Assembly (NCBI RefSeq): GCF_009834535.1
Contig: NC_045707.1
Coordinates: 17,112,001-17,176,000, forward strand
Direction: 5' to 3'
From: Camelus ferus
Taxonomy: Eukaryota
DNA: 64,000 nt
The stretch's first letter is position 1. Each line of letters opens with the position of its first letter. The position numbers and the translations under genes were made by a program. Positions 45,482 through 62,881 of this stretch are shown piece after piece. Under the pieces are notes generated by a model that made no database searches, was not told the origin of the DNA, and worked only from the letters and a program-made list of their open reading frames with translations.

Positions 45482-48400
45482 CTAACATTTGCGGCAGCTA
45501 CTGGCGCAGGACCCCACGCCACAGGAGCTGATGCCGCAGGAGCCCACGCCGCCGGTGCCCAGGCCACAAGAAGTGATGGAATTGCAGGGGCCGCAGGGCG
45601 CGCACAGGCCGGTGCTCACCGCCACGTTCCCGGTGCAGGGGGCGCTGCAGACGCTGCCCGTCACGGGCCTGGAGCCGGACACGCCCAGGTCCCCGCAGAC
45701 AATTCCGCCCCGGGAGCTGCTGACACCTGCGAACCCCAGAGGCTGAGTCAAAATTCTGGGGAGCCAAGTTTCCCACCTCCCAAATGATGCCCCTCCCCAA
45801 GCATCTTTACTTCACAACTCTAGGTCCATCAGCTACCAAAGCTGTGGTCTTTCCTGCTGTCTGACCCCAAATTCCTCCTGTGACGCCAGGCCACTCTTCT
45901 ATTTAGGTCTCAACAAAACCTCTCCTTCCATCCCTTACAGGAAGCAAGTAAATCCATCCACACAGGGCCCAAGTTACTTACAGACATTCACGGCCCCAAC
46001 ACCTTCACATAGTCTGTGAAAGAAGAGGAAAAAGGCAACATTAGTGACTCAGCCGAGATGCAGACAGAGCTCCACACATTTTGGGAGTGGGGTCCAGCCG
46101 TGGTCAAGAAGGTAGAAGCAGAGAGTCTGCAGGAATAGTCCTCTGAGCTAACCACCCCAAAGTGATAAATGAAAGGTTTGTCCTGGATCTGGGGCCATTG
46201 CTCAGCCAGGACCAGGGGAGTGCTTGTGCACAGAGTAGGAAGGGGCAGCTCAGAACCAGGCTGGNNNNNNNNNNNNNNNNNNNNNNNNNNNNNNNNNNNN
46301 NNNNNNNNNNNNNNNNNNNNNNNNNNNNNNNNNNNNNNNNNNNNNNNNNNNNNNNNNNNNNNNNNNNNNNNNNNNNNNNNNNNNNNNNNNNNNNNNNNNN
46401 NNNNNNNNNNNNNNNNNNNNNNNNNNNNNNNNNNNNNNNNNNNNNNNGCCTCACCCTGCTGCTCAGCCTGGGTCACTGCTGCCTCCAGCTTGGAGATCTA
46501 GGGGGCCCAGAAGAGAACAAGGTGGGTTATAGTCCACGGGTCTCTGTGCTCATTTCCTACATGTGTCCAGTCTCTCCCAGCCAGCTGGGATCACCCCAAA
46601 CAGGGCCTCTCCCCTTCATCACCTGTGTCTCCCTGACTGATCACAACCAAGACTCTGGTCATGCAAATAGACTGGAGAATGAATGGTGAGATCCATTTGG
46701 GCGCAAACTACCCCCAGCCCCCCTGGTCTTGGGGAGAGATGACCCCTACCTGGCACTTGGCGTTCTCCACCTCGGCCGTCAGCCTCTGGATCATGCGGTT
46801 CAGCTCGTTGATCTCCTCCTTAGTGCGGCGCAGGGTCTCCCCTTGCCGGATCACCGTGGCCTTGATCTCCTCACACTGAGGGGAAGCAGAGAGTCTCAGG
46901 AAGCTCGGGATGGGACGTCCTGACCATTCAGGACACATCAGATGATGTGCCAGGTGTACAGTGCTCAGCTTGTGCCGCCATACATGGCAGCCCTGTCCTG
47001 CCTCTAGAACCTGAGAGCTGTCTGACTTTTGTTACCACCTCTAGGGAACAGAATCCTCTGACAAAAGAAGCCTTTTCTATTATACACCTCAAATCCCTCC
47101 CATCACCATGTATAGGAGGCAGGGGTCCTGGGCCACTCACTTTGCTGCGGTACCAGGACTCAGCCTCAGCCCGGCTGCGTCTGACGATGTCATCGTACTG
47201 CTCCTTGATCTCAGCGACGATGCAGTCCAAGTTCAGGTCCCGGCTGTTGTCCATCTTGACGATGACCGAGGTGTCTGAGATGTTGGCTTGGAGAACGCGG
47301 ATCTCCTGCAGATGGTGGGGTGGCAGATGGAAGGATTTTGTTTACACCACTGCCTCACCAACCAAGTCTGTATCCAGCCTTCTAAGCCCTTCCCTCGTCT
47401 CTAGCCACTGCCCCATCTGACAGCCTCATGGACTGCAGCTCCTTGCCCAAATCCCCTTCAACTCCAATCCCGGAAAACTGCCCTGTCTTCCAGGCCAGCT
47501 GCTGGTTTTCTGCCTGGACCGCAACCCCTCACCTCCTCATAGAGTCGCCGCAGGAAGTCAATCTCCTGGATCAGGGCCTCTGAGTTGGCCTCCAGGTCTG
47601 ACTTGCGGAGGTAGGCGCAGTCCACATCCTGGAAAGGTGGGGAGTCTTTGAGCTCAGAGAAGCCCTGGTAAACATCACCTGAAATCCTCTCTCATCACCC
47701 ATTACATGGAGGCAAGGAGGAAAGGATCCCCAGTGTTCCTATTCCCATCCCATTTCCATACCCTTTCCCCAGAGGAACCTCACAATCTTCTCCCCTTCTG
47801 TGAGAAAATGCTTTGTGCCTTGGAGATGGACCACCAGCCTTTCACCCCTCCCACCTGAGACATCTTAGCCTCCCAGCTCTCCTTTACACCCTCCCCGGGA
47901 CCAGGAAGCCTGCCAGACTGACTCACTCACTCGGCCACCTTGATCCTTCCCTGTCCCCCAGCAGTCCTCCGAAGCTCCACCTGGCCTCTCCTGGTTCTGC
48001 CCCATCCTCCCCCAGGCCCTGGGACTGTGCCCCTCCTCTGAGCAGACTTCTCGCAACGCTGGACAGGACACCGTCCCTCAGCTGAGAGACTGAAGTTGCC
48101 ACGTCTCCATGGGACCCCAGCCACAGAGCAGAACCTCTGAAGCAGCACAGAACATCCAGAGGGCAAGCCAGCCACCCTCCTGCCCCAGGGCGGGTGCTCG
48201 AGGAGACTCCAAAGTCCTTGTCCCTGTGAAAAGCCTGGATGTGCCTTGCATGACCTGGTCTCTGGGATATTCTCCTCCTGACCCGGCAAGGTCAGTGCAG
48301 CCACACTGAGGGGGAGACCACGGGTCTCCCCAACACGAGCCTGTCATTCTGAGCCACCACGCGTCTGTGCTTCCCGATCCCGTGTTCCTCACCTTCTTCA

Positions 48401-61900: not shown

Positions 61901-62881
61901 AAGATGGACAACAGCCGGGACCTGAACTTGGACTGCATCGTCGCTGAGATCAAGGAGCAGTACGATGACATCGTCAGACGCAGCCGGGCTGAGGCTGAGT
62001 CCTGGTACCGCAGCAAAGTGAGTGGCCCAGGACCCCTGCCTCCTATACATGGTGATGGGAGGGATTTGAGGTGTATAATAGAAAAGGCTTCTTTTGTCAG
62101 AGGATTCTGTTCCCTAGAGGTGGTAACAAAAGTCAGACAGCTCTCAGGTTCTAGAGGCAGGACAGGGCTGCCATGTATGGCGGCACAAGCTGAGCACTGT
62201 ACACCTGGCACATCATCTGATGTGTCCTGAATGGTCAGGACGTCCCATCCCGAGCTTCCTGAGACTCTCTGCTTCCCCTCAGTGTGAGGAGATCAAGGCC
62301 ACGGTGATCCGGCAAGGGGAGACCCTGCGCCGCACTAAGGAGGAGATCAACGAGCTGAACCGCATGATCCAGAGGCTGACGGCCGAGGTGGAGAACGCCA
62401 AGTGCCAGGTAGGGGTCATCTCTCCCCAAGACCAGGGGGGCTGGGGGTAGTTTGCGCCCAAATGGATCTCACCATTCATTCTCCAGTCTATTTGCATGAC
62501 CAGAGTCTTGGTTGTGATCAGTCAGGGAGACACAGGTGATGAAGGGGAGAGGCCCTGTTTGGGGTGATCCCAGCTGGCTGGGAGAGACTGGACACATGTA
62601 GGAAATGAGCACAGAGACCCGTGGACTATAACCCACCTTGTTCTCTTCTGGGCCCCCTAGATCTCCAAGCTGGAGGCAGCAGTGACCCAGGCTGAGCAGC
62701 AGGGTGAGGCNNNNNNNNNNNNNNNNNNNNNNNNNNNNNNNNNNNNNNNNNNNNNNNNNNNNNNNNNNNNNNNNNNNNNNNNNNNNNNNNNNNNNNNNNN
62801 NNNNNNNNNNNNNNNNNNNNNNNNNNNNNNNNNNNNNNNNNNNNNNNNNNNNNNNNNNNNNNNNNNNNNNNNNNNNNNNNN
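58935..62881 (+). CDS. KRT86: Type II hair keratin 86, exons 1-7 (3' partial)
   Basis: Exons: 58935-59303, 59689-59897, 60705-60765, 61530-61625, 61853-62017, 62283-62408, 62661-62881 (end inferred, N). Head [18 protein letters not shown] matches KRT86 ([18 protein letters not shown] as recalled); head-to-head with KRT81 as in human. No exon 8 found before 64000. Confidence 0.87.
59304..62710 (+). repeat. Right arm of the ~3.4-kb inverted repeat (KRT86 intron 1 to exon 7)
   Basis: Reverse complement of 46448-49854; only a few substitutions seen. Confidence 0.95.

Follow-up and report, generated by a model that had tools for sequence, protein, structure and literature searches.

Evidence for recurrent gene conversion between the inverted hair-keratin genes KRT81 and KRT86 of camelids

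Introduction

Two type II hair-keratin genes, KRT81 and KRT86, lie head to head in the 64,000-nucleotide (nt) stretch of the wild Bactrian camel (Camelus ferus) genome analysed here (contig NC_045707.1; this whole stretch is hereafter referred to as the window). They are almost identical from the beginning of intron 1 to exon 7, introns included, and have different promoters and heads. How so long an internal segment has come to be, and to remain, the same in two separate genes is the question raised by this locus. An initial annotation, made from the window alone, proposed very recent or ongoing gene conversion, with the use of one consensus for both copies during assembly as the alternative. 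Interlocus gene conversion is the unidirectional copying of sequence between highly similar paralogues, and its tracts are limited by flanking divergence. From comparisons of the two genes in four camelid species, we put at about 0.9 the probability that recurrent interlocus gene conversion keeps the block between the beginning of intron 1 and the end of exon 7 near-identical in the inverted KRT81 and KRT86.

Structure of the inverted repeat

BLAST alignment paired positions 46448-49852, carrying KRT81 on the reverse strand, with positions 62710-59306, carrying KRT86 on the forward strand, over 3405 nt, with six mismatches and no gaps. The near-identical inverted repeat first described, with x pairing with 109158-x and no net indels, is thus borne out by exact alignment. 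In an offset test, the rule x + y = 109158 gave 100% matches per 100-nt bin over 46458-49757, except in three bins (99%), and random matches outside; the match drops to random past 49852/59306. A repeat finder, which counted N runs as matches, returned a single inverted pair (46265-49852 and 59306-62893) with 9453 nt between the arms, in agreement with the spacer of about 9.5 kilobases (kb) initially proposed. The core of the repeat (46448-49839; 3392 nt) contains exactly three mismatches (48073/61085, 49047/60111 and 49118/60040), all of them transitions located in introns 2 and 3. Exons 2-6 of the two genes are therefore identical at the nucleotide level, and not only in the peptides that they had been said to share. 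The initial count of three internal substitutions holds for the core, their places being right to within 1-8 nt, and three further mismatches (49840, 49842 and 49849) are present in the last 13 nt at the inner edge of the arm.

The borders of the repeat are sharp, with identity falling within a few nucleotides from 99.9% to 91.5% (exon 1) or to unalignable sequence (promoters and intron 7). As the initial annotation had stated, heads and promoters differ: the visible parts of exon 1 are 91.5% alike in the two genes, and pairwise alignment within the window detected no similarity between KRT81 and KRT86 upstream of exon 1 or downstream of the masked parts of exon 7. Positions 62902-64000 likewise have no similarity to the KRT81 side. 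Two other hair-keratin genes in the window (hereafter referred to as B, reverse strand, about 15.9-21.5 kb, and C, forward strand, about 26.1-29.8 kb) match KRT86 at only 82-95%, mainly in exons. Exon 7 of both KRT81 and KRT86 begins with ATC after an unusual tag acceptor, giving the peptide ISKLE rather than the NSKLE of genes B and C; this shared peculiarity had already been noticed and is seen in both genes. The splice sites mapped for exons 1-7 are canonical apart from that after exon 2, where the mapped exon is followed by TG instead of GT. The components of the arms, in window coordinates, are as follows.

46448-49852, reverse strand: KRT81 arm, visible part (exons 2-6 with introns 2-6, preceded by the 3' 383 nt of intron 1 and followed by 50 nt at the start of exon 7)
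KRT81 exons, reverse strand: exon 2, 49469-49260; exon 3, 48452-48393; exon 4, 47628-47533; exon 5, 47305-47141; exon 6, 46875-46750; exon 7, starting at 46497
59306-62710, forward strand: KRT86 arm, visible part (beginning at intron 1 nt +3 and including the initial 50 nt of exon 7)
KRT86 exons, forward strand: exon 2, 59689-59898; exon 3, 60706-60765; exon 4, 61530-61625; exon 5, 61853-62017; exon 6, 62283-62408; exon 7, starting at 62661
46265-46447, reverse strand: KRT81 exon 7 mask (N), covering the remainder of exon 7 and about 12 nt of intron 7; same length as the alpaca homologue
62711-62901, forward strand: KRT86 exon 7 mask (N), covering the remainder of exon 7 and about 20 nt of intron 7; same length as the dromedary homologue

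Both visible outer ends of the arms abut N runs inside exon 7 (46265-46447 and 62711-62901). The window contains six such runs (the other four being 15707-15863, 26317-26445, 29792-29959 and 50213-50341), all of which fall on conserved exons of keratin genes (four on exon 7, two on exon 1). The four exon 7 runs begin 50-80 nt into this exon in four hair-keratin genes, each after a shared peptide starting with N or I, and the other two, of 129 nt each, occupy the same place in exon 1 of two genes; the equivalent stretch of exon 1 is unmasked in KRT86 (59151-59279) and in gene B. For three runs, the length is that of the homologous stretch in a relative: 183 nt in alpaca for 46265-46447, 131 nt in alpaca between the alignment ends (50211-50341) for 50213-50341, and 191 nt in dromedary for 62711-62901. 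These runs are therefore exact-length masks, apparently deliberate, over conserved exons, rather than unsized gaps or gaps at repeat edges. The run at 50213-50341 lies outside the repeat and covers codons 73-115 of the 123 codons of KRT81 exon 1; its flanks are in frame and colinear with KRT86, at a constant offset of 109492 on both sides.

The same arms in other camelid assemblies

The locus was compared with the assemblies of alpaca (GCA_048564905.1), Camelus dromedarius (GCA_036321535.1) and Camelus bactrianus (GCA_048773025.1). Comparison with related species had been suggested in the initial annotation, and the same head-to-head, near-identical arms were found in the assemblies of all three. 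The full arms, exon 7 included, are 3554 nt long with 99.16% identity in alpaca, 3578 nt with 99.67% in dromedary and 3578 nt with 99.69% in C. bactrianus. In the eight-way alignment (KRT81 and KRT86 of four species), five of the six C. ferus differences (59309, 59316, 59318, 60040 and 60111) recur in C. bactrianus, and the sixth, at 61085, is a variant private to C. ferus KRT86. A collapsed or copied-over consensus can be rejected because these copy-specific variants recur in another assembly, and the suggestion that one consensus had served for both copies is accordingly abandoned. Judging from the assembled sequences, the inverted arms are real rather than the product of a collapsed assembly.

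Concerted evolution of KRT81 and KRT86

Site comparisons covered about 3380 nt homologous to the visible arm, either in a six-way alignment (KRT81 and KRT86 of C. ferus, dromedary and alpaca) or in the eight-way alignment, which adds C. bactrianus. The two arms differ at six sites in C. ferus, nine in C. bactrianus, eight in dromedary and 25 in alpaca (per approximately 3400 nt), corresponding to 99.3-99.8% identity within each species, whereas the camel and alpaca orthologues differ at 105-117 sites (about 96.8% identity in the arm). Over the same sites, the paralogues of a species are thus more alike than orthologues of different species. At 91 sites of the six-way alignment, all four camel sequences differ from both alpaca paralogues; 86 of these concerted substitutions are intronic, and 33 indel columns (26 + 7) follow the same pattern. 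Neutral sequence, introns and indels, has been homogenised as well, and selection on the protein provides no explanation for the pattern. Only one paralogue-specific site, 59309, located 4 nt from the tract edge, is held in all three species of the six-way alignment, and it is present also in C. bactrianus. In the maximum-likelihood tree, the two alpaca paralogues group together (100/100), as do the two dromedary paralogues (90/90), the C. ferus pair being left without resolution.

Variants have also been transferred singly in recent sister lineages, as seen at 60014, 60071, 61321, 62336 and 62599. In the six-way alignment, KRT81 and KRT86 share a derived state at four sites in dromedary and at one in C. 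ferus; positions 60071, 61321 and 62336 are derived in both dromedary copies, and 60014 in both copies of C. ferus and C. bactrianus. At 62599 (eight-way alignment), a difference between KRT86 (T) and KRT81 (C) is kept in alpaca and C. bactrianus and has been erased in opposite ways in C. ferus (T in both) and dromedary (C in both). Copying therefore ran in both directions and, in C. ferus, occurred after the split from the domestic Bactrian camel. The proposal of very recent or ongoing conversion is supported by these transfers, by the excess of within-species over orthologue identity, by the 91 concerted sites and 33 indel columns, and by the tree.

The divergence of the C. ferus core (3/3392, 0.09%) is about one quarter of that between C. 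ferus and dromedary in the tract (11-15 differences in 3404 nt); C. ferus therefore underwent its last near-complete homogenisation long after these species had split. Dromedary and Bactrian camels separated roughly 4-5 million years ago, and camels and alpaca about 16-17 million years ago. On these dates, the last near-complete homogenisation in C. ferus would, as a rough estimate, have taken place near 1 million years ago. Position 62599 reveals events later than this.

Three further features of the arm sequences were recorded. The guanine-plus-cytosine (GC) content of introns is 57.7% inside the arm, versus 45.7-51% in adjacent non-coding DNA and in the introns of genes B and C. Position 62439 is T in both paralogues of the domestic Bactrian camel and dromedary and G in the wild Bactrian camel and alpaca, and 62609 is discordant too. 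In intron 6 of alpaca KRT86 (homologous to 62585-62647 of the window), seven private substitutions are clustered in about 60 nt. Import of this cluster from KRT83 or from paralogue C was considered and rejected, as only one of the seven is shared with dromedary KRT83 and one with camel C; the cluster may come from another alpaca paralogue, or be a mutation cluster or an assembly error.

Limits of the tract

The following features lie between the arms or beyond their ends.

49853-50188, reverse strand: 5' 336 nt of KRT81 intron 1, with 334 nt extra relative to KRT86, lost in camelid KRT86
50189-50557, reverse strand: KRT81 exon 1 (369 nt; head and start of coil 1A), including the mask 50213-50341
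50558-58934, no strand: intergenic part of the spacer, with both divergent promoters; its two ends have no mutual similarity
58935-59303, forward strand: KRT86 exon 1 (369 nt), with its GT donor at 59304-59305 directly before the arm
45485-45811, reverse strand: open frame encoding the tail of the last KRT81 exon (...SSCRKC), outside the repeat; 45811 is the start of the open frame and not a verified exon boundary

The intergenic part of the spacer is colinear with that of alpaca (96.4% identity) and dromedary (99.5%), and exons 8-9 of KRT86 lie beyond the end of the window.

On the outer side, the arm ends 223 nt after the start of exon 7 in dromedary, C. bactrianus and alpaca, a distance equal to the 221-nt exon plus its GT donor, and the outer ends in the window are expected near 62883 and 46275, under the masks. 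Beyond the exon 7 donor, intron 7 is unrelated between KRT81 and KRT86. In the relatives, 2-4 of the differences between the copies fall in the final 173 nt of the arm, and the outer edge is therefore, like the inner edge, less homogenised than the rest.

On the inner side, the arm starts at nt +3 of intron 1 in KRT86. KRT81 has 334 extra nt at this end: its own intron start and about 304 nt precede a second copy of a motif of about 30 nt, at which identity to KRT86 begins. This region of KRT81 (49853-50188) has counterparts in intron 1 of paralogues C (26446-26799) and B (20942-21193), with 80-83% similarity. A long intron 1 with both copies of the motif occurs in KRT81 of all four animals compared (camel, alpaca, ibex and donkey) and in ibex KRT86, and is lacking in camelid KRT86. 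As the long form is present in the outgroups and only camelid KRT86 is short, the difference is a 334-nt deletion in camelid KRT86 between old direct repeats, and this deletion is common to camel and alpaca. The reverse interpretation, in which KRT81 intron 1 would be a chimera with a non-homologous junction at 49852/49853 and a block of KRT86 type received by conversion, was rejected on the basis of the long introns of ibex, donkey and alpaca. The heterology created by the deletion forms the inner limit, at which conversion stops.

The limits of the tract differ in other lineages. In donkey, 463 nt of the KRT86 gene body are available, from about 150 nt upstream of exon 2, and match KRT81 at 98.3%; the available 5' parts of the two genes are 90-95% alike in ibex. 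Intron 1 of ibex KRT81 carries an insertion of about 470 nt (positions 10980-11452, approximately, of the ibex locus) that is found in this intron alone and interrupts the homology between the two genes there; it resembles a ruminant short interspersed element.

Alternative explanations

If a single consensus or contig had been used for both copies, or if one copy had been falsely duplicated in inverted orientation, the arms would be almost identical and both outer ends might well abut N runs, as they do. However, exon 7 carries such an exact-length mask in each of the four paralogues, and the runs are not gaps at the edges of a repeat; arms bounded in the same way are present in the assemblies of C. 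bactrianus, C. dromedarius and alpaca, and five of the six C. ferus differences are found again in C. bactrianus. Each arm is, moreover, continuous with exon 1 of its own gene, and that of KRT81 also with the KRT81 tail, and annotated proteins of 507 and 486 amino acids (aa) are present in five assemblies; an artefact of assembly is scarcely credible. Very high identity extending to introns and sharp boundaries would also be expected had one inverted segmental duplication arisen recently in the camel lineage, its arms being alike because they are young, with no recurrent conversion. But alpaca has the pair in the same orientation and with both tract boundaries, donkey and ibex too possess the gene pair, and camel and alpaca arms differ at about 107 sites versus 6-25 within each species. 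One duplication cannot generate the 91 differences common to both paralogues of a genus, and we accord this explanation a negligible probability, the lowest of those considered.

Reciprocal crossovers between the arms deserve somewhat more attention. Arms of 3.6 kb that are more than 99.7% identical and 9.45 kb apart are, on established knowledge, a competent substrate for inversion by non-allelic homologous recombination, and variants have moved between them in both directions; homogenisation might then be due mainly to recurrent inversion of the spacer, with conversion as a by-product and a locus that flips and is possibly polymorphic today. Against this, each head is joined to the tail of its own gene, K81 to K81 and K86 to K86, in every one of the five camelid assemblies (two of C. 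ferus and one each of C. bactrianus, C. dromedarius and alpaca). Flank, arm and spacer are colinear with alpaca, as are the spacer, KRT86 arm and downstream flank with dromedary, and in donkey and ibex KRT81 (507 aa) adjoins an upstream, divergent 486-aa gene in the same layout. We therefore regard crossover as the main route of homogenisation as very unlikely. No inverted spacer haplotype was found among the five camelid assemblies, a small sample in which a rare inverted allele could be missed, and recurrent inversion or a standing inversion polymorphism of the 9.45-kb spacer in camel populations, as raised in the initial annotation, is unlikely, if less so. Were it to exist, crossover in the arms would swap promoter and head between the KRT81 and KRT86 tails, and some animals would carry swapped keratins with swapped regulation and a possible effect on the fibre.

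Recurrent gene conversion itself has several points to its detriment. It is deduced from phylogenetic site patterns, the events themselves not being seen, and the two-copy structure is likewise judged from assemblies and not from reads. The C. ferus assembly may under-call a few arm differences, having three in the core versus six in both C. bactrianus and dromedary. The GC excess of the arm introns is only suggestive as a sign of biased conversion. Finally, the discordant positions 62439 and 62609 need incomplete lineage sorting, introgression between dromedary and Bactrian camels or repeated conversion, each of which is possible.

Proposed mechanism

Under recurrent conversion, the starting point is an old head-to-head pair of type II hair-cortex keratin genes, with the same layout in camels, alpaca, donkey and ibex. 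The colinear block, which opens with intron 1, closes with exon 7 and encodes the whole rod after coil 1A, is subject to recurrent non-allelic conversion between the inverted copies, with variants copied both ways, such that a substitution or indel arising in one copy is either erased or spread to the other. The molecular route would probably be the repair of breaks templated by the inverted copy, without crossover. Conversion is limited by loss of homology, on the inner side at the 334-nt deletion in KRT86 intron 1 and on the outer side at the unrelated intron 7, and nucleotides at the edges, being converted less often, retain old differences between the paralogues. The promoters, the heads (exon 1) and the tails (exons 8-9) remain gene-specific, yielding two proteins with the same rod and with different regulation and end domains. 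GC bias of the conversion and a selective benefit of identical rods may also be involved.

Possible involvement of KRT83

The first codon of exon 7 has changed from Asn to Ile in camelid K81, K83 and K86 (P0337, P0328 and P0389; positions 62661-62663 and 46495-46497 of the window and near 24359 of the dromedary K83 locus). Asn is kept at this position in ibex K81, manatee K86 and opossum K81 (AKCQNSKLE) and is present in genes B and C of the window; donkey K81 has SQNSKLE at that place. The presence of the change in all three camelid paralogues suggests that KRT83 shares in the conversion.

In dromedary, KRT83 lies beyond the point corresponding to the end of the window and carries a tract of about 1.06 kb (24131-25197 of the dromedary locus) that is 93% identical to KRT86, extends from exon 5 to the end of exon 7 with the introns, and ends at the same exon 7 donor. 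Gene C (28886-29768) is alike over the same stretch, at 85.7%. The KRT83 and gene C tracts look like older or rarer exchanges over the same cassette.

Relation to known systems

The concerted evolution of K81, K83 and K86 in mammals has been recognised from gene trees and ascribed to conversion between paralogues or unequal crossing-over (Nery et al. 2014, BMC Genomics 15:869, PMC4195889). The same genes and the same process are involved in the camelid tract. However, the portion of that paper available rests on gene-family trees and describes no tract, whereas the camelid case is a tract defined at the nucleotide level that includes introns 2-6 and most of intron 1. It is further distinguished from the cases in that portion by its extent, from intron 1 nt +3 to the exon 7 donor, by the explanation of its limits and by the dating of conversion after recent species splits. 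Our literature search, which did not extend to the classic paper on the human locus (Rogers et al. 2000), retrieved no description of the intron-inclusive inverted tract, its limits or camelid data.

Inverted arms around a unique spacer, with arm identity within a species exceeding orthologue identity between species, are features that the camel locus has in common with the palindromes of the human Y chromosome. Rozen and colleagues are said to have found, in 2003, that the arms of these palindromes are about 99.9% identical owing to intrachromosomal conversion. The two differ in that the camel arms are about 3.6 kb long, autosomal and made up of internal gene segments (heads, tails and promoters differ), versus 9 kb to 1.45 Mb for the arms of the human Y palindromes. 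Unlike interlocus conversion in human genetic disease, the camelid tract has no disease allele, is long and has been repeatedly renewed over more than 15 million years.

The camelid tract thus adds a new, well-resolved case of a known process, in three genes whose concerted evolution had already been reported, and is in this respect unsurprising; it leaves the understanding of keratin gene evolution unchanged. Its value is that a long-lived tract of conversion between inverted genes is mapped cleanly to the nucleotide, with its limits, their causes and its tempo over four camelid species. It has consequences for annotation and variant calling in camelids, as short reads cannot be assigned to KRT81 or KRT86 from intron 1 to exon 7; only two of the C. 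ferus core sites, 60040 and 60111, also separate the two genes in C. bactrianus. Any variant of the rod domain, including fibre-relevant or monilethrix-like variants, can be copied between KRT81 and KRT86.

Gene assignment and annotation

The genes were named by proceeding from a search with the head domain to full-length hair keratins and then to named camelid proteins. The K81 locus of C. ferus in assembly GCA_009834535.1 is 100% identical to the window outside the N runs. The KRT81 product is annotated as "type II cuticular Hb1" (K81, 507 aa) and that of KRT86 as "Hb6" (K86, 486 aa), and the heads of both genes and the K81 tail in the window match the annotated camel K81 and K86. The gene names given in the initial annotation are thus upheld by annotated camelid proteins and their lengths, 507 and 486 aa, to which those of horse K81 and K86 are equal (PMC5573215). 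Assignment to the type II hair keratins follows from the Keratin_2_head and Filament domains (Pfam), the shared type II exon structure and the neighbours KRT7, KRT87 and KRT88; KRT7-type exons lie at 294-10766 of the window, and a KRT88 cassette near 38 kb. Nine open reading frames (ORFs) of the window that cross junctions or mismatch sites had no exact match in the sequence collection, and the top matches of the representative protein search, ORF fragments on short metagenome or Logan contigs, were not used.

One model in the alpaca annotation, a 549-aa "Hb6 isoform X1", spans 39 kb, running over KRT88 and KRT81 into KRT86 (2001-40999 of the alpaca locus). The probable cause of this read-through model is that transcripts are hard to assign when exons are near-identical.

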